This document shows positions 13,635 through 28,284 of a stretch of 64,000 bases of DNA, one piece after another. Both the position numbers and the translations under genes were made by a program. The notes under the pieces were generated by a model that had not been told where the DNA came from, ran no database searches, and worked only from the letters and a program-made list of their open reading frames with translations. The stretch comes from Paragordius varius. Its lineage: Eukaryota; Animalia; Nematomorpha. The stretch covers positions 14,942,001-15,006,000 of the forward strand of contig OZ176050.1 of the NCBI GenBank assembly GCA_964247055.1, in the 5' to 3' direction. The first letter of the stretch is position 1; each line of letters opens with the position of its first letter.

Positions 13635-14040
13635 AACTATAGTCTCTCCAGAATGGAGAAAGCAGATGTGCCCATGCTAAGGGATTACTAGTTCCTAGAG
13701 CTTTTTATTGAAGCCCCTATACGGCTCTGGGCACCGTACTCGGAGATTGGCCTGATAATCAATGGCCCTCATCCATCGGCCACCGCCACTACCAAGAGCT
13801 TGCCAACCTTGTTGGAGACTTGCTATCAACCTGTGTCGCTTAGGTACGACACCCGGTGCATCTTTATATCGAGTATAGGATTTACCTTATCGATCGTAAC
13901 CGTACCGTGTAGCAGTGTTCACATACCTCCACGACTCTTAGATTCTCCAATGCCGACCCACCCCACCCTAAGGCCGTCATTAAAACGCTGACGTTGCCGG
14001 TGGTTACCACGTGGAGGTGTGGGAGTAGGATTTGACCACC
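13635..14040 (-). mobile_element. Short non-coding element C: HDV-like ribozyme head plus structured body (SIDE-like non-autonomous retroelement)
   Basis: Starts right after the 28S-like GTGTCAGAGTTACCACAGGGAT (14041-14062); body homologous to 18025-18300 (e.g. ACTCGATATAAAGATGCACCGGGTGTCG, AATCCCTTAGCATGG, CTGCTTTCTCC..CTGGAG.GACTATAGTT); followed by ATAAAAAA. Confidence 0.75.
13961..14040 (-). ncRNA. HDV-like self-cleaving ribozyme, slightly degenerate (element C)
   Basis: P1 GGUGGUC/AACCACC, P3 ACC/GGU with L3 UCCACGU, P1.1 GG, CAAC, P4 CGUCA/UGACG, then GC, P2 CCUACUC/GGGUGGG; folded by eye. Confidence 0.65.
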
Positions 14041-14169
14041 ATCCCTGTGGTAACTCTGACACAATCAGTCGAAAAACTTACGCCTCTCATGAGGCGGTTG
14101 TGATCCATTACAATCAGATACCACAATACTAACCGTAACTTCCCAACCTGTCGATTATGAGACGCTCAC

Positions 14170-17100
14170 TTTTTTATATTATTTTTGTAAAATTTTATAA
14201 TTATTTTCATTCACACGCACGCAATATATGTATATATATATTTATAGAAAGGTTTTTATACGTCCTCTCGATTGTAACGATTTTTTAAGCTTCATCATTT
14301 ATGTCAAGGTTCCCTTTACCTCCCTCATCTTGATCCAGGCTCTTGACTGTAGGTGCCTGTTCGATGCCCACATCCTCCTATCGGACACATGAACTCACCA
14401 TCACATGTTTGAAGGCTTCCTTTCCACGTGGAGGAAGGTTTGCTGTGGTCTAAATTAGACCTGAGTGAGACGGTTACTGATTAACCCTTCGGGACTGGAA
14501 TCATCGTTCCAACGATATTCCATGGACATTGTTTTGGTGGTTTTTAAGCCTCCCTAGAGTCTTGTATGATTTGGAGCAACCAACAACCCCACTTGGGTAT
14601 GGATTGCTGCTCTCTTCCCTTTCCTTGGGCATATGACAAACCGTAACATGTCTTTTCATATTCTTTTCGTTTAAGAATTTAACCGCACAACCATCAACTG
14701 AACAGGATACTGAGGCGACTGTTTGTAAAGGTAATTTATTGACATTTAAGTCCTTCGATTTCCTTCCTGGATGCGCAAACTCAGGTAGTTTCCCATTCTG
14801 CACATGTCCGTTTGAAATCGTCAAGATTTCGACATTCGACTTCGTGTATACGAAGTAACCCGTTTACACCTTTGTTTAACACAGACCAGTCCAGATCTCG
14901 TTGGACACAGTGCTCCCATCTTTGTCTACAGCGTGCTTCGACTTTCGTTTTACCCAGCACCCCATCGTACAACTGAGCTGCTAGTTAGAAGTTTGACCAA
15001 GGCATAGCTTGCTGAACCAGCGCAGCCTTCTACTACTCAACAGTTCATTCACATGAGGGAGCTTTACCACTGTTGGAGACTTGGAAAGGGTACCTTATCT
15101 GATCGTGAAACACCCACACACCTTCTAATTCAGACATTGAGAAAACTATTCAACCTACTCACGTCTGCCTTAGTAGTGTTCCACGTTTCACAGCCGTACA
15201 ATAGAGATGGAACCACGAAACCCATTATCAGCTGCCGTTTTATCTTGTTAGCGATTTTCTTGCTTTCCAAGATAAGTTTCACTTTACGCAACACTTCTCC
15301 TTGTGATTTCGCGGCTGACACCTCCCTTCCTACAGATCTCACCGAGGTACGTAAAGCTATCTAAGTCTTCAATTACATACGTTTCTAGCTTTATGGTAGG
15401 TTGTCTTTAGTTCGACAACTCTAAGACTTTCGATTTGCTCATCGAAATTAGGATACCATATCGTTTAAACGTTGTGTTTAAACGTTCCAATGCCAAGGAA
15501 AGTTCATTTCGATTGTTACTGACTTGCACGATATCATCTGCGAATGCTAGTGTCTTCACTGCAGAAGTGCTCTGACTACAAGGGGAGGGTTTTTTTTAGT
15601 GATACTACCTTCCAGTTGAAGATCAGGTTCCCGAAGGCATGACTCTAGAAAGATGTTAAACAGGGCAAGTGAGAGTCTGCAACCTTGCCGAACGCCCCGT
15701 TCAGGTTTGAACTAACGCGAGGTATTGCCTTTCGACTTTACTCTCGCTTTATTGCCGTAGGTCAAATTGGCTATGAGCCTAAGTAACATCGGACCGCAGC
15801 CCGCTTTTCCCAGACAGTCCATTACCCCATGAGGGACGCTATCAAACGCCTTCTCGAGGTCAATGAAGATAAAGTGCGCCTATGTGTCAGCTATTCGAGA
15901 TTCTTCTTGCAACCTTCGAAGCGATAATATTAGGTCACAAGTAGATTTCCGCTCCCTGAACCCACATTGGTAATAGCCCACCACTTGTTTGGACAGCATC
16001 TGCAATCGTTCGTTCAGAATGCCACTGAAGATCTTCCCATCAATGTTGAGTAAGGAGATGGGACGATATGATTTAGGATCAATCGTCTTACCCTTGCCCT
16101 TATATATCGGATATATCCGCGACTTTCCAATCTTCCGAAATGCATTCCGTCTCTCAAACCCTTTCGAATATGCTCTTCAGGCATTCAATGACCGATACAC
16201 CACCCGCATGATACAATTCCAAGGCTATACCATCCTCACCACTACTCTTTCCAAATTTCATTTTCCTCAAGGACCGTTCGATTTCGTCTCTTGCGGGGAC
16301 ACTATCGTTACATTCCACACCGCTAGCGAACAATGAATCACCAAAGATGTCGCCACCACTTTTACGATACACGGATTCATAGTATGTGGCCATATCTACC
16401 ACATTAGCACACGGACCTTTCTGCTTATTTGCACTACTGTCCAGCCACTTGTTGCAAGTGCTTACCACCGCATCAAGAATTACAGAGATACCTTTCGAAT
16501 TGTTGTTCACTAGACAGTGCTCCACTTCTGTAGCTTTCTTATCTACCCATTCTGTCTTAAGGGCGTAAATCTTTTGTTTTACAGATTTGTTTAGGGCTTT
16601 GAATGAAGCCTTACATTTTAACTGGCTTTTCCACTACAGATTGTTTTCAAAGTTTTCGTTTGGCGTTAATGTCAACAAGAATTTCTTCTTGATTTGGACC
16701 CGGGCACACGTTTAATCCCGTTTTCGGAAACGCAGGAATACATTCTCTTAATGCATTCTTTAACGTTGTTACATCAATCTCCCCACTGTGTGAACGTAAC
16801 CTCTCTTTTACGTTGTGTTCAAAGTTTTCTCTCAATTATTTGATAGTCACCAGGGTTAGAAGTTCGTCTTTAATTGGCCTCCTGTGTCAAGGTAGGTCCT
16901 TCTTTGGACGAGTTCTTTGCCTTTCACTGACGAATTTTTCCAACAACCCGTGTCCGTAAGATGTCTTTCAACATCCATAACCCAGAAGCTAATTCCCCTG
17001 TGAACTAGTATCCGATCATGGGTAAAGCCTTTGCTACTAGGGTGTACCCAAGTGTCCATTTTCCAGTAAGGTTTCTGGAAAAGCTTCCAACATTCTTAAG

Positions 17101-17959
17101 ACCATGTACATAGTTTAACGAGAGATTACCGTTATTGTTTCCAGCATGATTTCTAGCAATGTTCAGTTTTCCGAACATGCCATTACTTTCGCCTGATCGA
17201 TCGACTTGAGCGTTAAAATCACCAAGGACCATATATCCCGATTTTATGTTTTTCAGTGGAGCACCAAGAGTATCGTAAAATTCCGATTTTTCAACAGCTT
17301 TTGCCGATTCGACCGGGGGGTAGACCGAAAATATCGTTATGTCATATTTATTTACTTTCAGAGCAATTCTTGGACTAATGTCCTCGAATTGGCAATTATC
17401 GGCAATACCTTTCTTGATAAGAAACCCGCATCCACGTGTACCCGCCTTATCGCTTGAGCCTGTAAGGGGCCTGTATGAGAGGACATCCTTGTCTAACCCC
17501 TTGCCATGGCACTCCGGCACTGCAAGAATGTCAACGCCTTTCTTTTCTCACGCGGAGCTCACACTTCAGGCCGTTGACATTCAGAATACCTATTTGGATG
17601 CTTCTGTTACTAGAGCCTGGTCACACCCTTTTTTCTCGGATTGTTGTTGTAGGATAACTGTTTTGTAATGTATTCGAAAAAATAGTAGTACTGTATCTCA
17701 TGATTGTATTGAATAGGCTGTACACTGTGAGTTATGGGTTTGCCAAAGCCCGAGAACTCAAAACCTCCTTTGGTTACACAGTCCAGTGCATAGACTGCTT
17801 GGCCAACTAGAACAGTATCGATTGTATCGGTTTGTCGGAAGTTAGTCTCCTCCTTCCGACCCTTCACCTGTTAGATTTGCCTTGACCCTGTTTGCCGTCA
17901 TTAAAATGACGTTGCCCGCCGGATCACCACTAGGAGGTGGGGTAGGACTCTGATCCAGC
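14170..17959 (-). mobile_element. Element B: RTE-clade non-LTR retrotransposon (APE endonuclease, RT, C-terminal C2H2 fingers), frameshifted
   Basis: APE motifs IGILNVNGL (~17590), DILAV, SVYPP, GDFNAQV, WVHP..DRILV; RT motifs KSSGEDGI, YRPISLL, QCGFR, FIDLEKAFDSV, GVRQGC, AFADD (~15540); RTE-type LLYGCETW and RRRLRWF. Many stops and frameshifts; 3' boundary approximate (A-rich tract ~14170). Confidence 0.88.
17881..17959 (-). ncRNA. HDV-like self-cleaving ribozyme at the 5' end of element B
   Basis: GCUGGAUC..(P2 ACCC)C-ACC-UCCUAGU-GGU-GAUCCGGC-GG-GCAAC-GUCAUU-UU-AAUGAC-GGC-AAA-CAGGGU; the GGGCAAC...GGC.AA core matches the HDV genomic ribozyme. Confidence 0.8.
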
Positions 17960-18024
17960 ATCCCATGGTAAATTTCCTGACACGTCCCGCTTTAAACGCA
18001 GCGGTCCTTTCGATTCCATATAGG

Positions 18025-18365
18025 AACTATAGTCACTCCAGAAAGGAGAAAGCAGTTGTGTCCATGCTAAGGGATTGCAGTTCCTAGAGCCTTTTCGTTC
18101 TTGAAACCCCTATACGATCTAGACACTGTAATCGGAGTGTATTGGCCTGAGCACACAATCACTAACCCCCATCCAACGGCGTACGTTCCCAGTCACAACA
18201 AGCCAACCTTGTCAGAGACTTGCTGTCAACCTGTATTAGGTTCGACACCCGGTGCATCTTTATATCGAGTAAGGGGTTAATTATACCGATCGTTATAGTA
18301 GATTTGTACCGTTTTGTGGCACTTAGCACAAACACCGCTCGCGGAGGTGGGAGTAGTTTGCCACC
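18025..18365 (-). mobile_element. Short non-coding element A: truncated ribozyme head plus body homologous to element C
   Basis: Directly abuts the 28S break; begins GGTGGCAAACTACTCCCACCTCCGCG (P1-P2-P3 5' half, rest deleted); body alignable with 13635-13900. Confidence 0.75.
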
Positions 18366-19054
18366 ATCGGTGTGGTAACTTTTCTGACACTCCCGCTTTA
18401 AACTCGAAATATCAAAAGGATCGACAGGCCACGCTTTCCCGGTTCGTATTCATGCTGAATATCAAAATCAAGCCATCTTTTGCCCTTTTACTCCGCGAGG
18501 TTTCTATCCTCGCTGAGCTCGCTTTAAGACACCTGCGTTACCATTTGACAAATGTACCGCCCCAGTCAAACTCCCCACTTGACACTGTCTTCGAAACATC
18601 CATCACGCTAGCCAACGTTGCCACTAGCGCATAAGAACAAACACAGAATCTGTAACAGCACACATATCATAAGCACATATACCCCGAGGGGTAATACATA
18701 TTCACATGAGCCACATGCCTGAACACATACGCAAGTAAAAGCAACAACCCACGCTCACAGCTAAAACCATAAAGCCCCAACAAGGAGGCTTCCATTTTCG
18801 CACAATCGAATAAGTAAAGAAACGATGAAGGTAGTGGCATTTCACTGTTAGTAACCCTCCCATTAATCCTACACCCTTCATGTGTCTTCACAGAGTCGGA
18901 TTAGAGTCAAGCTCAACAGGGTCTTTTTTCCCCGCTAATTCCGCCAAGCCCGTTCCCTTGGCTTTGGTTTCGATAGATAGTAGATAGGGACAATAGGAAT
19001 CTCGTTGATCCATTTATGCGGGTCACTAATTAGATGACGAGGCATTTGGCACCA

Positions 19055-19094
<40 letters not shown>

Positions 19095-20110
19095 ATTGAA
19101 TTTATTCACTTTGACATTTAGAGCACTGGGCAGAAATCACATTGCGTCAACACCGACCAACAGCCATCGCAATGCTTTGTTATAATTAGACAGTCGGATT
19201 CCCCGAGTCCGTACCAGTGACTGTTAATTGCCAGACGAAGCGTACATCGACACCACGAGTGCGACTGAGACCGCATTAGCTGAAGTAATGGACAATAAGG
19301 ATTCGGCGCTGTTACAAACAAAACCCAAAGGTTACACTTAGCCAGGCACGATTCCAGCTATGCTTCTCACTACAGACCGATCGGCCCAGACTTTAAAGCC
19401 AATCCTTTTCCCAAAGTTACGGATCTAATTTGCCGACTTCCCTTACCTACATTATTCTATCGACTAGAGGCTGTTCACCTAGGAGACCTGCTTATGGGTA
19501 CGATCTGGTACGAAAATTATGCGCCATTCTCAAATTTTCACGGATCCTTAACGGTGCTTCGGACACCACAACAGCCGTTATGCTGATTCCATTTCCCTAT
19601 CTACGGCTTAACCGATTTTAGGCGAATCTCTTCCCCTCAAAGCAAAGAAAACTTTTCCCGAGACCGCCAAGAATGTATTTGAGATAGCTTGCGTTACCGC
19701 ACTTAATTATACCCAGCTGTTGCACCGAATACAACCAATCTCCGTTACCAGGTTCGGGAATATTAACTTGATTCCCTTGCGCCAACCGACGGTTCACACA
19801 AACACATAGGATACAAACCAACCAGTTCACAACGAACTTATCCTGTAGCTTAGGATCGATTGACCCATGTGTAACTGCTGTTCACAGGAACCTTTCTTCA
19901 CTTCAGCCTTCAAGGTTCTCACTTAAAAATTCGCTACTTTTACCAAGATCTGCACCAAAAACGGCTTCAAACCGGCTCAACCCGAATCCTTCGACGCTCA
20001 TCCTTGCGACTCTCTTACTCATTCGATTCGGACAAAAAACATATGACACCTTTTCAATGGTTGGTTATAGGCTCAACGCTATAGCGCCATCCATTTTCAG
20101 GGCTAGTTGA

Positions 20111-20144
<34 letters not shown>

Positions 20145-21613
20145 ATTCTGACTTCCATGGCCACCGTCCTGCTTCTATAACACTATTTGTGGTATCTAAT
20201 AAGCGTTAATATCGGGCGCCTTAACCCAACGTTTAGTTCATCCTACATCGCCAGTTTACCGAAAATGGCCCATAAACATTCATAGCTCGACCTATCAAGC
20301 GACACAAGCTGCTTACCCATTTAAAGATTGATAATAGGTCGAGACCGTTTCGATCCCGAGATTTCTAATCATTCGCTTTACCGGATAAAACTGTTTTCCA
20401 TTTACACCAGCTATCCTGAGGGAAACTTCGGAGAGAACCTGCTACTAGGTGGTTCGATTAATTTTTCGCCCCTATACCCAGGTTTGAAGATCGATTTGCA
20501 CGTCAGAATTGCTTCAGACCTCCACCAGGGTTTCCTCTGTCTTCACTCTGCCCAGGCTTATTTCACCATCTTTCGGGTCCCAACATGTACGCTTTCTTTC
20601 CACCACATCATGATTGCTCCGATCATGGCAGAACAGAAGGGACAATGTAAGAAACACACAATTTCCTTCTCAAGCTTGCGACAAGCTTTTTACTTTCGTT
20701 ACACCCACGGGTTTTTGAACTGTATTCCCTGAGACTTGCGCCTGTTATACTTCTTGGTCCGTGCTTGACGAGTCGGCAAAGCATTGATTTCCACGCCGCA
20801 TACCTTGTTCTAGGATGCGTACCTTCCTATCACTTGGAATCGACAAGGTGGGCAGTTTTTACACCGTTACCAACCTATTGTTTCGCACACACACAATTTA
20901 TGACAGAAAGAACGCGCTTCAAGAGCAACTAAAATATAGTGTTCGATATCAATCACAGGAATAATAGTAACCACAGAAAAGGCTTGTGAAGCATAAAATA
21001 CCTTGTTCCCGCACCAACCCAGGATTAACACCGCAATTAGCAGCGGCAACGACGTCACTTAAATACCATCCAAGTCACATGCAAAACAGGCTTGGTTGGA
21101 TAAGTAATAAATTACCGGTCTCTACACCAAACATATTTATATGCTTCCAATCAAGGATAACAAGTTACTCTTTCCAAGCTTTTCCGCTTAACTTTAAGCG
21201 ATTTCATGTACTATTTAACTGTCTCTTCAAAGTTCTTTTCAACTTTCTCTCACGGTGCTTATGCGCTATTGGACCGTGTTTATTTAGTCTTAGAGGAAGT
21301 TTAATACCCAATTTAGGCTGCAATCCCGAGCAACCCGACTCTAGGGAAAACAAATCGAACTTTGTGCACGCCAAACAAAACTTGGCCTCTCTTTGGGTAG
21401 GAGCCGCTATCAAACGGACTTAAGACAAGCAACAAATCCCGAATAAAGTTTTAATTCACGCCACATTTCTTGTCACTCGCATGATTGAAAGATTTAGCGC
21501 GGGACTTATCCCTATTTCACTCACAGTTACTTTAGGAATCCTCGTTAGTTTCTTTTCCACCGCTTATTAACATTCCTAAATTCAGCGGATGTTCACGCTC
21601 TATTTGAGGTCTA
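18366..21613 (-). rRNA. 28S rRNA: 28S rRNA, degenerate copy, 3'-truncated at the U2449-equivalent site
   Basis: GACCTCAAATAG..CCGCTGAATTTAG 5' end; conserved core blocks present (e.g. GATGACGAGGCATTTGGC, CCGCCCCAGTCAAACTCCCC on + strand); stops at GTTACCACACCGAT; the expected AACTGGCTTGTGG... continuation is not found. Confidence 0.93.
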
Positions 21614-24880: not shown

Positions 24881-26101
24881 TTTTTTCGTCAGTTGTTTTT
24901 TCTTAAAAAAATGTTGCGGTTGGTTGAAAAAGTTGGTTTTGACTGAAAAACGATTACCTGTATATGGAACAATTGTTGGTTATTGTGGCCGTTAAAAATT
25001 ATTTTATTCGTCCCGTGAAAAATCGTAAAAATTTCCAATTTTCGTTCAACCTTGTGTAAATATACATTATGTATTAAAATTATGAAAACCTAAAAATTAA
25101 AAGTGAAGTATTTTATTATTTAACCATATTTTTACAAATGCAAATACTTAAAAATTCATTATAATACATTTGATATAGAAAATATCCAGTTTAAATAGTA
25201 TGGTTTTATGTTCGAAAGCAATTTTATCTTCTATTTTTGCGTTTTGTCTCTATAATTAAAATATTTAGTAGTGTAATTAACAGTATTGTTAAATTTCGCA
25301 TTTTGTTATAATCCATATAAGCTCTAAATATAGATTGGTTTTCACCGGATAGATCGGTATTGTTCCAGGTCATAAACCTGAGCCTAATAATATTTTTCAA
25401 AAATTGTGTAACTTATACCCTTTAAAAAAGCATTTTTAATTAAAATTGAATTTTGAAAAAATAACTCCAAAGCAAAAATAATTAATCAGTCAATGTAATA
25501 GTTTTTTAAACATTAATTATAAATTTTTCCATTAACTCTAACATTTTACGATATACCAAAAATTTATCATACATTTCAGTATCCAATCAAATTATTTTTA
25601 TTAGTTCATTTATCAAATAAATCACCCATGAGTTTATGTCCTTTTCAAACAAGTCGTATATTATTAACTTTGACAAATAGATTTCATCACAGAAAAATGT
25701 TAGAAATTTTGGCTAATATATCGTGACCTTATTTATATGTTAAATATTTTTCAGCTCAATCACAACAACTGAAATTATTTTGGAAAATATATATGGTTAG
25801 CAGAAATGTATATATGAATTTTTATTTTGTTATAATGGTTAAAAATATCACATAATGATTAATTAAATACGATCGTCTCTGTTTTTTAATTTTATTTGTA
25901 TTGGTGAATATTATATCATAATTTTTATCGATATTTCCGATCAAAAAATAATAGAATAAAAAGTAATTGTAAAGTGATTGGCATGATCTGTTATAAAATT
26001 ATCATACATAACATATATAATTCATAAATACAATTGATTAGTTATTAAATTTCCCAACCCCAAATTTTTTTTTTGAAAAAAGCAAAATATTGAATTTCGT
26101 C

Positions 26102-28284
26102 ATGTATGAAATGAATAGTGTATATTCGATTGATGCTTGTAGTAGAAACAATGTGAATCACCCTAATTACAATCCAACATCTAAAATTGAAACGTCCAGT
26201 ATTGTTCCCCAATCTAATGTAAGAACCGATGAATATTACGAGACATTCCGACATGACCGCTACAAATTGTGTGTCGAATCTAATTACTTTATGGACACGC
26301 CTATTTCAAGCACCACTAATTATGCAAGCATAAATCGCAATAGTATATCAGTGGCTATCAGCTCATTTTACGAACAAAAAGTTTTAGGGCGGAAGCAGGC
26401 CCTGTCCACAGCTATACAGGAGATGGCCCCCGTTATTTGTGATTTGTTGAAAGAAATCGAGAAATCTGAGCCGCGGTTTGTTAGTTCCCTAAATTACGAT
26501 GAAACGAGCGGGCGATTTGATGGATTAACTGTTGTGGGGGGAACGCTGGCTGCTTTTAATTTAACTGATAATTCTGAAAAGTTGGAGAAGCATTTTAACA
26601 CTAACCTATTAAGTCCTCCCAATTATATGATATGTTTGGAGGTTAACTTATTCCTCAATCAAATGGGCGTCTTTAATTTCGTTGATGATGGGAATAGCCC
26701 AGGGTGCTCGGTCCTTAAGCTTAGCGATGGCCGAAAAAGGTCTATGTCTCTTTGGGTTGAATTTATAACTGCATCGGGATTTTTGTCAGCCCGTAAAATC
26801 AGGGCTAGATTTCATTCGCTTCTTATTGATGCTTGTGCTAAAATTGAGGGGATATACGGCAAGACAGGTGGGAATACCACTGATGGTAACCCGAATCGTA
26901 ATACGAAACCTATTATAAAGATTTTCGCGTCCACTGAGCCCTATGTAGAATCTGTATGTTCTTCCTCTACTAACAAACTCTTATATTCAGAAACTTATAA
27001 GCCAGACCCATTTAACAATTCATCATTATCATCCATTTATCCTTTGTGCAATGAAAATTTTTCTGGAACATCCTTTGAGAATAATGATGAAGATAGTCTT
27101 AATTTTGAAAAGACCAAACAAAATATTCATAACACCACAAACGGGGACGTTACACTCACGCTTTGGGACAAATACCACGTAACCATTGTTCCAGCCTTTA
27201 GGTGTCCGGGGATGTGGCCTTTAAGTGCTAATGCTTGGCCTTATAACAGAATATCTAGGCACCATTTATCAAATGGATCTGGTGTTTCTAACAATAAAAA
27301 CGAGACTACGTCCACAGCTGTTCCAATCGGATTGCCGTTTTTGGAGCCTAAGATATCGCTATGGCCTAATCAAGACCTCATAAGTAAGGCAAAATCAAAA
27401 GGATTCTTACTTATTTCCAGGGAACCGCAAAATTATACGACGCTCAACAAACAGCTACAAACTGAAACAACCAAACCCCCGTTTGGAAATAGTGATAACA
27501 CATGTAAGGCAAACAATCTAATAAATACCAGCACTAAAACCGTCTCTATACCCCAATTACCGCCATGTTTGGCTGATGAGAAATTTTCACTTGCAAATAG
27601 TTTGATGTTTGAAGGTGACACTTGGCTCATGACTTTCACTGAGGCCGAAAACATTTTACTGGAGGGCGGTTGCCGGAAAATTATTTTTCAAATACTTAAA
27701 ACTTTAAGAGATCGTCATTTGAATGAAATACCTGGTTAATTTATTCATTTTCTTATATATTTTGTTTTATTTGTTAAATGGCTAAGAACCTTTTTTGATT
27801 ATATGTTTAGTATTAAATATTTTTTAGAAAATACATGTATATTTTTTTCGTAGGTAAACCAATTAGTGTATATGTACTTAAAACGTTGCTCCTGTTTGAA
27901 TGTGAAAAACATCCTTACGATTTTGAATGGGATTGGCATATGGCCTCACCAACCCCCATAATAAGCCCGACAGAAAATTTAACAGGACAATGGACAAGAG
28001 ATTCAAAATGCAATTCTCTCTATCAACCATATTCAGAGCAATCTGAGACAGCGTTAAAAGCCTATACAATACCTCGCAATCCACTGGTTTTAGATCGAAT
28101 TATTGGCGTTTTGAATCAACTTTTACATTGTTTAGGGACTAAAAAGTGTCCCCATTATTTTTTACCGGCAGTCGATCTTTTCAAGGAATACCCCAGCCTT
28201 TGTTTAACGCTTGCGACAAGGGAAGTTTGGAAACTTTTGCGAAAAATAACTTTTAGTCCGGAACATTGTTGGAAACATTTATGA
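26102..28284 (+). CDS. mab-21: Mab-21 family protein (MAB21L1/2 orthologue) with large insertions, 2 exons, ~687 aa
   Basis: Exons 26102-27734 and 27854-28284 (GT-AG, 119-nt intron); near-identical hallmark blocks LNQMGVFNFVDDG..PGC.VLKLSDGRKRSMSLWVEFITASG.LSARKIR, ILKTLRDRHL, ECEKHP, CPHYFLP. Confidence 0.95.

Follow-up and report, generated by a model that had tools for sequence, protein, structure and literature searches.

Retrotransposons with fixed insertion sites in ribosomal RNA genes (rDNA) serve as the model of target-primed reverse transcription, and work is under way to engineer one of them, R2, for gene insertion at safe harbours. The systems closest to the elements described here fall into several groups. 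R2 occupies 28S genes in the sense orientation, lacks a promoter of its own and is freed from the co-transcript by a 5' HDV-like ribozyme (PMC3774820). It has a single ORF with zinc fingers implicated in target choice, occurs as several lineages per genome and has given rise to non-autonomous derivatives (PMC3414825). As proposed below, the present elements resemble R2 in these respects. However, the restriction-like endonuclease of R2 is C-terminal and its fingers, accompanied by Myb, are N-terminal, whereas here an APE domain is N-terminal and the fingers are C-terminal; the insertion site, in the peptidyl-transferase region, lies ~683 nt 3' of that of R2. R9 of rotifers, a member of the R2 clade, is also 28S-specific and has an unusually long target duplication, comparable to the 28S-derived tails of 60-75 nt found on two elements below; according to literature cited in PMC5035012, it has a restriction-like endonuclease and uses another site.

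Elements of the R1 clade (R1, R6, RT1/RT2) are, like those described here, of the APE type and specific for 28S sites, but their two ORFs, CCHC motifs and frequent poly(A) tails contrast with one ORF, C2H2 fingers, a predicted ribozyme head and no poly(A) here. The RTE clade (RTE-1, SR2/SR3, BovB) shares the single ORF with APE preceding RT, the lack of a gag-like ORF and a size of 3.2-4 kb (PMC1291365), and 5' HDV-like ribozymes have been reported in some RTE families (PMC3774820, PMC5786205). In contrast to the present elements, RTE elements are dispersed and lack C-terminal fingers, and their very short 3' UTR has short, A/T-rich tandem repeats at its end. In the reviews consulted, the only LINEs with target specificity belong to the group with a restriction-like endonuclease and to the R1 and Tx1 clades (PMC4640811, PMC5786205).

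An orphan rDNA unit and its stack of elements

The window, that is, the whole 64-kb stretch of DNA analysed, contains one rDNA unit (Table 1). Its 28S sequence breaks off at 18366; the last bases, ...ACCACACCGAT, are the target in mutated form, and no 3' portion of 28S was found across the whole 64-kb window. This unit is a decayed, truncated orphan on contig C1. Its R1 and R2 sites are mutated yet uninterrupted, in agreement with the initial annotation, which had described both regions as empty and had put the new site ~690 nt 3' of the R2 site; the measured distance is ~683 nt. Downstream, the order is 28S-S-fam1-S, head to tail, where fam1 denotes the first of two autonomous families and S a short non-autonomous element. 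The stack is old and inactivated, inside an orphan rDNA fragment.

The initial annotation placed an APE+RT element at 14170-17959, in the orientation of the rRNA and beginning right after a copy of 28S sequence. The element is real and its first base is indeed 17959 (GCTGGATCAG...), immediately 3' of ...TTTACCATGGGAT. This junction is exact, but the 28S-like stretch that precedes it is the tail of an S copy, not the gene. The 3' end has to be moved to ~14050, because all genomic copies have ~120 more bases in common, ending ...GTGTCAGAGTTAC. The orientation stands: element and 28S both lie on the minus strand, and the copies in the main rDNA array on contig C2 are likewise sense. The two further element starts noted at 14040 and 18365 were both recovered and belong to two copies of S. 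A tblastn search with the intact family protein as query maps APE to ~17590-16930, RT to ~16080-15330 and three fingers to ~14700-14330 in the window element, whose reading frame is broken at least six times.

Table 1. Features of the orphan rDNA unit and the element stack in the window
Feature	Position	Strand	Evidence and remarks
18S gene	24320-22606	minus	One rDNA unit in window
5.8S gene	22209-22059	minus	Same rDNA unit as 18S
28S, 5' part, decayed orphan, stops at insertion site	18366..21612	minus	Rfam LSU match, 1767 bits
S copy C (short non-autonomous element)	17960..18365	minus	Degenerate ribozyme head; compared with genome copies L035-L039
28S-derived tail of S copy C, last ~60 nt	~17960-18022	minus	Ends ...TTTACCATGGGAT, restores target
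fam1 element, full-length, dead	14050..17959	minus	89-90% identity to intact C2 copies
Predicted fam1 HDV-like ribozyme, first 78 nt	17882..17959	minus	Rfam HDV-F-prausnitzii, 37.5 bits, E 4e-4; predicted cut at junction
Remains of three C-x4-C-x12-H-x4-H zinc fingers	14330..14720	minus	ORF pieces; fingers kept across clade
fam1 28S-like tail, 13 nt	14062-14050	minus	Follows 3' UTR
Restored half of the target, or target-site duplication (CACAGGGAT)	14041..14049	minus	Between fam1 and next element; read directly, compared with rDNA and off-target junctions
S copy B, 3'-truncated, without tail	13635..14040	minus	Ribozyme head 13961-14040: Rfam 33.8 bits (HDV-F-prausnitzii), 26.9 bits (drz-agam-1)

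Insertion at a single 28S nucleotide

The main rDNA array, on C2, comprises ~112 units. Its census was made from pattern counts of junction motifs, which occur 117, 112, 21 and 10 times genome-wide, with reversed controls giving 0; the motifs are thus commoner than chance would allow. Approximately 23 of the ~112 units carry fam1 (21 full-length and 2 5'-truncated junctions) and ~10 carry the second family, fam2 (10 junctions). The proteins of the two families have the same layout but only 41% identity over their full length. Both families insert 3' of one identical 28S nucleotide, ...GGGAT/AAC (the slash marks the junction), co-oriented with the rRNA. This point corresponds to the step from U2449 to A2450 in E. 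coli, in the peptidyl-transferase region. The search of the assembly that had been proposed for element-28S junctions found GGGAT junctions in the C2 array. The fam1 ORF (~1,180-1,235 codons) is intact in 22 of the 22 array copies fetched, which represent six sequence variants, 9-38 substitutions apart.

Copies at unrelated sites, which had been named as a possible objection should most copies be of this kind, do exist. Dispersed copies are found on C1, C2, C6, C7, C8, C10 and C11, but all are degenerate, and outside the array the ORFs are broken in every copy. The off-target copies are flanked by duplications of 8-12 bp, and two of the sites look like the 28S site (...GGGAT/A and ...AGGTT/AAC).

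It could be argued that a non-specific RTE-like element landed once in 28S by chance and was then spread through the array by unequal crossing-over. The dispersed copies would fit such a history, as would the higher-order duplicated blocks of the array and the many identical copies in it. Since the array holds large duplicated blocks, the fam1 and fam2 copies on C2 are not independent events. What makes a chance landing highly improbable is the range of sequences that share the position: two families only 41% identical and the non-autonomous S, all of which, in the C2 array or in the window, start 3' of the same nucleotide, as well as 5'-truncated copies. Two of the latter (L026 and L027) begin at fam1 base 457 yet follow the same 28S base, and this constancy of position in 5'-truncated copies is the signature of target-primed reverse transcription. 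Moreover, five relatives from other datasets, including unrelated environmental samples (L031, L032, L052, L056, itself 5'-truncated, and L059), adjoin 28S at the same place. Their flanks were classified by local BLAST against 28S pieces, including the homologous stretch of L050. Independent insertions at this nucleotide have thus already been observed in other species, and the degeneracy of all dispersed copies also speaks against chance.

The site specificity suggested initially is therefore supported well beyond the window. With one position, sense orientation and coding capacity kept only in the rDNA copies, these sequences have the hallmarks of the rDNA-specific class, and they very probably constitute a non-LTR retrotransposon family specific for one 28S rDNA site.

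Predicted ribozyme heads and 28S-like tails

In fam1, fam2 and S alike, the first element base is also where matches to HDV-like ribozymes start (Rfam; 33.8-42.2 bits, local E 3e-7). The scores lie below the Rfam gathering score of 44, with the full model length aligned. Pairing in the P1 stem is kept among the three through changes on both sides. The fam1 ribozyme is predicted to cut 5' of the G at 17959, which is the junction itself. No ribozyme was found in L051-L060, most of which are contigs that stop short of the element 5' end, nor was one detected at the 5' junction of L052, the sole intact one among the relatives. L061 gives a weak match.

At the other end, the 3' UTR of ~260 nt has no terminal tandem repeat and finishes in a 28S-like tail; in both autonomous families this tail resembles the 28S stretch that directly precedes the insertion point. 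The tails of S and of L059 are the longer, 28S-derived ones mentioned above.

S is ~460 nt long and consists of a fam1-type ribozyme head, a body and a 28S-like tail. Its similarity to fam1 and fam2 is confined to the tail and the ribozyme (81-86% over 58 nt). The genome copies L035-L039 of S end in this tail too and have target-site duplications of their own, and S is presumably mobilised in trans. It resembles the SIDEs of R2 and the bipartite non-autonomous LINEs, which are likewise short and keep the ribozyme head and the priming 3' end (PMC3414825, PMC5786205), but differs in that its body is unrelated to that of fam1 or fam2.

A finger-bearing protein, its relatives and a proposed life cycle

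The single ORF encodes, in this order, APE, RT and three conserved C-terminal C2H2 fingers. The N-terminus is Exo_endo_phos (Pfam), with the APE catalytic motifs present, and there is no gag-like ORF1, CCHC motif or poly(A) tail. R2 proteins from the PDB gave matches to the RT part only. Neither the C-terminal restriction-like endonuclease nor the N-terminal zinc-finger/Myb region of the R2 clade was found, and identity with R2 or R4 was rejected because the restriction-like endonuclease is absent. A reading as a group I intron or homing endonuclease was rejected because the protein is APE plus RT.

The three fingers are conserved in 15 aligned proteins of the clade, with the spacing C-x4-C-x12-H-x4-H. 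In AlphaFold2 models the intact fingers form three successive strand-strand-helix (beta-beta-alpha) units with pLDDT >90, so that all three have both the classical C2H2 spacing (C-x2-5-C-x12-H-x3-5-H) and the fold. They weakly match GLI and TFIIIA fingers; a word-based search using the finger region alone gave zero matches.

The RT tree groups the finger-bearing elements in a 16-member clade with support of 99, next to ordinary RTE-like elements. In this tree the sister group of the clade consists of ~1,000-aa APE+RT+DUF6451 proteins, some of them from Schistosoma, and the eight remoter LINE proteins included lie apart. DUF6451, a term not found in the literature searched, is present on the ordinary RTE-like neighbours and absent from the finger clade. 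The top two RT matches, P0011 and P0012, were rejected as close relatives, being gene models with two RT domains.

The initial assignment to the RTE clade survives in part. The nearest RT neighbours support it, as does the architecture: one long ORF, APE N-terminal to RT, no gag-like ORF1. The very short 3' UTR with A/T-rich tandem repeats that also defines RTE (PMC1291365) is not seen. The label RTE-like, as used here, thus refers to nearest neighbours and architecture only. The proposal of an independent rDNA-specific lineage is supported, but the lineage did not originate recently in this genome; it is a clade of wide occurrence whose hallmark is the three C-terminal fingers. Not all its members reside in 28S. 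L051 does not and ends in (CCATTA)n, and the 5' flank of L061 is not 28S.

Could the elements nonetheless belong to, or be close kin of, an rDNA element already known from this site or its vicinity? The candidates would be RT1/RT2 of Anopheles (R1 clade) or a Repbase entry. The initial annotation had listed RT among the elements at other 28S positions. Besansky et al. reportedly described in 1992 two families, RT1 and RT2, that share an insertion point ~630 bp 3' of the R1 site and whose two ORFs overlap, with Cys-His motifs in each ORF and poly(A) at the end. This distance is close to the ~610-625 bp found here, so that the RT1/RT2 site presumably lies near the present one, possibly within ~20 nt, and two families at one position is also what we observe. 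Such kinship is nevertheless unlikely. With one ORF, C2H2 fingers only and neither a gag-like ORF1, a CCHC motif nor poly(A), the present elements do not have the RT1/RT2 layout, and their nearest RTs are RTE-like. The early-branched, Tx1 and R1 groups are the only ones to which Kojima 2015 (PMC4640811) and Kojima 2018 (PMC5786205) assign target-specific LINEs. No description of such an element or family was found in the papers searched, to which this comparison was confined.

These features led to the following proposal. The element would have no promoter of its own and would be co-transcribed with 28S by Pol I. Its 5' HDV-like ribozyme would cleave the co-transcript at the junction, thereby creating the element 5' end, and the single protein (APE, RT and three C2H2 fingers) would be made from this uncapped RNA. 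The element was not found in any RNA run searched. The protein would then locate the 28S site, probably by means of the fingers together with the APE domain. The nick in the bottom strand would fall ~9-14 bp upstream of the cut in the top strand and would serve to prime reverse transcription. We infer both the contact of the fingers with target DNA and the nick positions from the junctions only. The RNA 3' tail, which mimics 28S just upstream of the nick, may align template and target, or may be the fossil of an older, longer duplication.

Under another, less likely division of labour, specificity would come solely from the APE domain together with the RNA tail, as in R1, TRAS and Tx1, while the fingers would bind element RNA or serve second-strand steps. 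In other specific LINEs of the APE type the endonuclease is itself sequence-specific, as is generally known, and the finger-bearing L051 and L061 lie outside 28S. Conversely, the fingers are the sole domain that separates the clade from its non-specific RTE-like neighbours, and those they resemble, in GLI and TFIIIA, bind DNA.

Taken with target-reading fingers, the proposal amounts to an undescribed, widespread APE-type (RTE-group) clade, long specific for one 28S site in the peptidyl-transferase region, that reached an R2-like lifestyle independently, via ribozyme head, co-transcription and fingers, and so would represent a second compact single-protein rDNA 'writer'. We hold the case for and against this full reading to be evenly balanced. 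If true, an RTE-like lineage combining rDNA targeting, a junction-cutting ribozyme and a DNA-binding finger array would be a clear instance of convergent evolution and a natural experiment on how APE-type elements come to choose their targets. A small single-ORF system for a different, universally conserved 28S site would be a further gain.

In the same scheme, tail plus duplication would restore an intact target at the 3' junction. Because the target is regenerated in this way, new elements could stack head to tail. Such stacking would be a simple path from transposon to tandem array.

The 28S site in the main rDNA array

It is well supported that the APE+RT family of the window (fam1) belongs to a lineage of real site-specific rDNA retrotransposons with RTE-like ancestry. 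A genome search recovers ~22 full-length fam1 relatives at 1.9-3.2 Mb of C2, the contig with the main rDNA array, at 89-90% identity to the window copy, as well as scattered copies elsewhere. Each C2 copy fetched is preceded by genuine 28S ending ...GTTACCACAGGGAT and followed by GTTACCACAGGGAT and then the remainder of the 28S, so that up to 14 bases are common to the 5' and 3' junctions. Off-target copies end ...GTTAC and have their own 8-12-bp duplications (e.g. TTCGGGAT, GTAAGGTT, TCGTCCCTCA; for the short non-autonomous element S, CTAGGTATTTTT). Therefore part of the 14 shared bases is the element's own tail, and the real 28S duplication is ~9 bp. The junctions suggest a top-strand break after GGGAT and a bottom-strand break 9-14 bp upstream. 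In standard E. coli 23S numbering, the break falls between U2449 and A2450, adjoining A2451 of the peptidyl-transferase centre.

The 5' half-site motif occurs 117 times in the genome and the site plus 3' flank 112 times, while the full-length 5' junction is found 21 times for fam1 and 10 times for fam2, a second autonomous family. All 31 junctions lie on C2, as do all half-site and site matches among the matches listed; reversed control motifs have no occurrence in the genome for any of the four counts. Two further fam1 copies (L026, L027) are 5'-truncated yet sit at the same 28S base. From these junction counts (21 + 10, plus the 2 truncated), ~30% of the ~112 array units are occupied. Since the array holds large repeated blocks, its copies are not independent events; fam1 is present there as six sequence variants, 9-38 substitutions apart per 4 kb.

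Array orientation switches several times at C2 1.8-3.2 Mb, and empty, fam1 and fam2 units follow one another in a recurring order (compare the stretches from 2.18 Mb and from 2.92 Mb), reflecting either a higher-order repeat structure or an assembly duplication. At C2:2448858-2449667, two complete empty target motifs in the same orientation, 783 bp apart, indicate that part of the 28S 3' region is duplicated inside one unit. Contig C8 (903135-926813) carries a tandem series outside rDNA, in which five degenerate fam1-like copies (L029, L030 and their neighbours) follow one another at ~5.8-kb spacing, with 82-84% identity to the copy in the window. All five share one 10-bp duplication, TCGTCCCTCA, as if a segment holding a single off-target insertion had been amplified later.

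The stack in the window and the short element S

The window lies on another contig (C1:14942001-15006000), far from the main array, and holds only a dead stack of the lineage. The R2 and R1 target regions of its single 28S, which the initial annotation had called empty, are indeed uninterrupted, though mutated. The 3' part of the 28S is absent anywhere in the 64 kb. After the break come three head-to-tail elements, all on the rRNA strand. The start of fam1 at 17959 and its rRNA-sense orientation are confirmed by the window sequence. Its 3' limit had been placed at 14170; all copies run ~120 bases further, ending ...GACTGATTGTGTCAGAGTTAC, and the window copy is extended accordingly (see table). 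The "further elements" reported at 14040 and 18365 do start there, and both prove to be copies of one ~460-nt element, S.

S shares its ribozyme head with fam1 and fam2 at 81-86% identity across 58 nt; the S body is related to neither family. At its 3' end S has a tail that copies, in diverged form, the ~57 nt of 28S directly upstream of the site and ends ...GTGTCAGGAAATTTAC(CACAGGGAT). Because dispersed S copies (L035-L039) retain this tail, it belongs to S. The 28S sequence directly 5' of 17959, initially taken as a copy of the target, is thus S tail and not gene. Together, tail and duplication would restore the target at every 3' junction, which would explain the 28S-S-fam1-S stack.

The sole long ORF of the window (26090-27739, plus strand; 549 aa) encodes a cGAS-like Mab-21 nucleotidyltransferase domain (E 2e-21), which points to an animal host; the ORF lies ~1.8 kb upstream of the orphan 18S.

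Features of the window, of the fam2 locus (L050) and of the fam1 protein; every ribozyme score is below the Rfam gathering score of 44
Feature	Location	Strand	Remarks
18S	window 24320-22606	minus	single rDNA unit of the window
5.8S	window 22209-22059	minus	same unit
28S, decayed copy	window 21612 to break at 18366	minus	ends after mutated form of ...GTTACCACAGGGAT
S, first copy	window 18365-17960	minus	406 nt; first in stack
fam1	window 17959-14050	minus	second in stack; then CACAGGGAT at 14049-14041
fam1 predicted ribozyme	window 17959-17882	minus	37.5 bits
S, second copy	window, starts 14040	minus	third in stack
S predicted ribozyme	window 14040-13961	minus	33.8 bits; drz-agam-1 26.9 bits
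fam2 locus L050	C2:2270700-2278700		28S, ribozyme, ORF, 3' UTR, AAAAGTTACCACAGGGAT, 28S
fam2 predicted ribozyme	L050:232-309		HDV-type model, 42.2 bits, local E 3e-7
fam2 ORF	L050:1096-4788		1,230 codons
Exo_endo_phos (APE)	fam1 aa 38-266		Pfam
RVT_1 (RT)	fam1 aa 561-811		Pfam, E 2e-40
C2H2 signals	near fam1 aa 1066-1091		Pfam, weak

Protein and predicted 5' ribozyme

Of the fam1 copies fetched from rDNA, the 20 full-length ones keep an open frame of 1,199-1,235 codons, and 1,105 codons stay open in the two 5'-truncated ones. Copies outside the array are all broken, the window copy among them with at least six frame disruptions. The protein, with a length of 1,179 aa when counted from its first Met, has APE catalytic motifs that can be aligned to those of the L1 endonuclease (N in LNVNGL, E in QECH, YAP, GDFN, DHR) and an RT with FADD. 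Its C-terminal 180 residues contain three C-x4-C-x12-H-x4-H units, modelled by AlphaFold2 from a 15-sequence alignment as three strand-strand-helix fingers (pLDDT >90), with weak PDB matches to GLI and TFIIIA. Both the fingers and the 3' tail presumably have a role in the lineage. The fam2 protein is 41% identical to that of fam1 across its whole length, fingers included. Two families so divergent, both intact at one position, argue for long residence at the site.

The heads of fam1, S and fam2 align to Rfam HDV-type models across the entire model length. With the best-scoring one, HDV-F-prausnitzii, the alignment begins precisely with base 1 of the element in all three. The P1 5' strand varies (GCUGGAUC in fam1, GAUGGCC in fam2, GGUGGU(C) in S) and the 3' strand changes in step; L3/P3 and the GGGCAACG core are invariant. 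The heads are candidate self-cleaving ribozymes, and the elements would be co-transcribed with rRNA. Such a head is ordinary in kind, since R2, R4, L1Tc and certain RTE families also have HDV-like ribozymes at the 5' junction (PMC3774820, PMC5786205).

Relatives and known rDNA retrotransposons

With an E cutoff of 1e-30, an exhaustive HMMER search returns >2,800 proteins. The nearest are ~1,000-aa APE+RT proteins on ~3.3-kb contigs, many with DUF6451 and some from Schistosoma, which fit the published RTE architecture (PMC1291365). In a quick IQ-TREE of the RT core (56 rows, 490 columns), fam1 and fam2 fall inside a 16-row clade (SH-aLRT 99) that is sister to ordinary RTE-like proteins. Nearest neighbours and architecture support the RTE assignment of the initial annotation as an RTE-like label. 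The 15 aligned clade members carry fingers, but not always three: P0032 and P0229 stop after finger two, P0218 has no recognisable third, and P0236 lacks the first in its aligned part. Conserved motifs are ...F(A)ExKE..RH, ...YKTxGWLxxH and CPxxxCxKxxxTxKGxxNH.

The contigs of ten finger-clade relatives were examined for flanks. Five adjoin 28S at the same place, bearing out, with fam1, fam2 and S in this genome, the proposed site specificity: L031 and L032 by their 3' junctions, L059 by a 3' junction with a ~75-nt 28S-derived tail (this element occurs in an SRA run as well as in an NCBI assembly), L052 by a 5' junction four bases further 3', and L056 as a 5'-truncated copy. Three contigs (L033, L055, L057) are too short to tell. 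Two elements are not in 28S, L051, which ends in (CCATTA)n, and L061, whose 5' flank is not 28S and which gives a weak HDV-like match (24 bits). From these flanks, 28S specificity in the finger clade is old and widespread, not universal.

These elements resemble R2 in lifestyle: they sit in rDNA in the sense orientation, start with a ribozyme head, encode fingers in a single ORF, exist as several lineages and have non-autonomous derivatives. Having no restriction-like endonuclease, they are not R2. The enzyme layout of fam1 and fam2 is that of the RTE group, but they lack its defining short 3' UTR with terminal repeats and, unlike ordinary RTE-like neighbours, have added the finger domain and miss DUF6451. 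R1-clade RT1/RT2 do not look like fam1, which has a single ORF and lacks both a CCHC motif and poly(A). Anopheles RT1/RT2 are reported to lie ~630 bp downstream of the R1 site, i.e. within ~20 nt of the fam1 site; the site may therefore already be known, even should the lineage be new. Target-specific LINEs are described in early-branched, Tx1 and R1 groups (Kojima 2015, PMC4640811); RTE is among the ribozyme-bearing clades, with only R1, R2 and R4 named as target-specific (Kojima 2018, PMC5786205). An rDNA-specific RTE-like family was not found in searches of full-text papers, a scope that leaves aside Repbase Reports and older subscription papers.

Near-identical fam1 sequence occurs in runs from four studies that bear four organism labels, and in part under four more labels; none of these are RNA runs. 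L061 is filed as a Candidatus Thiodiazotropha sp. MAG protein (GCA_040507055.1, JBEVVQ010000502.1) and is almost certainly eukaryotic host DNA binned into the MAG. Outside the finger clade, the RTE-like L054, with (GT)n on both sides, and L053, with (GTGTAT)n at its 3' end, may be microsatellite-targeting relatives.
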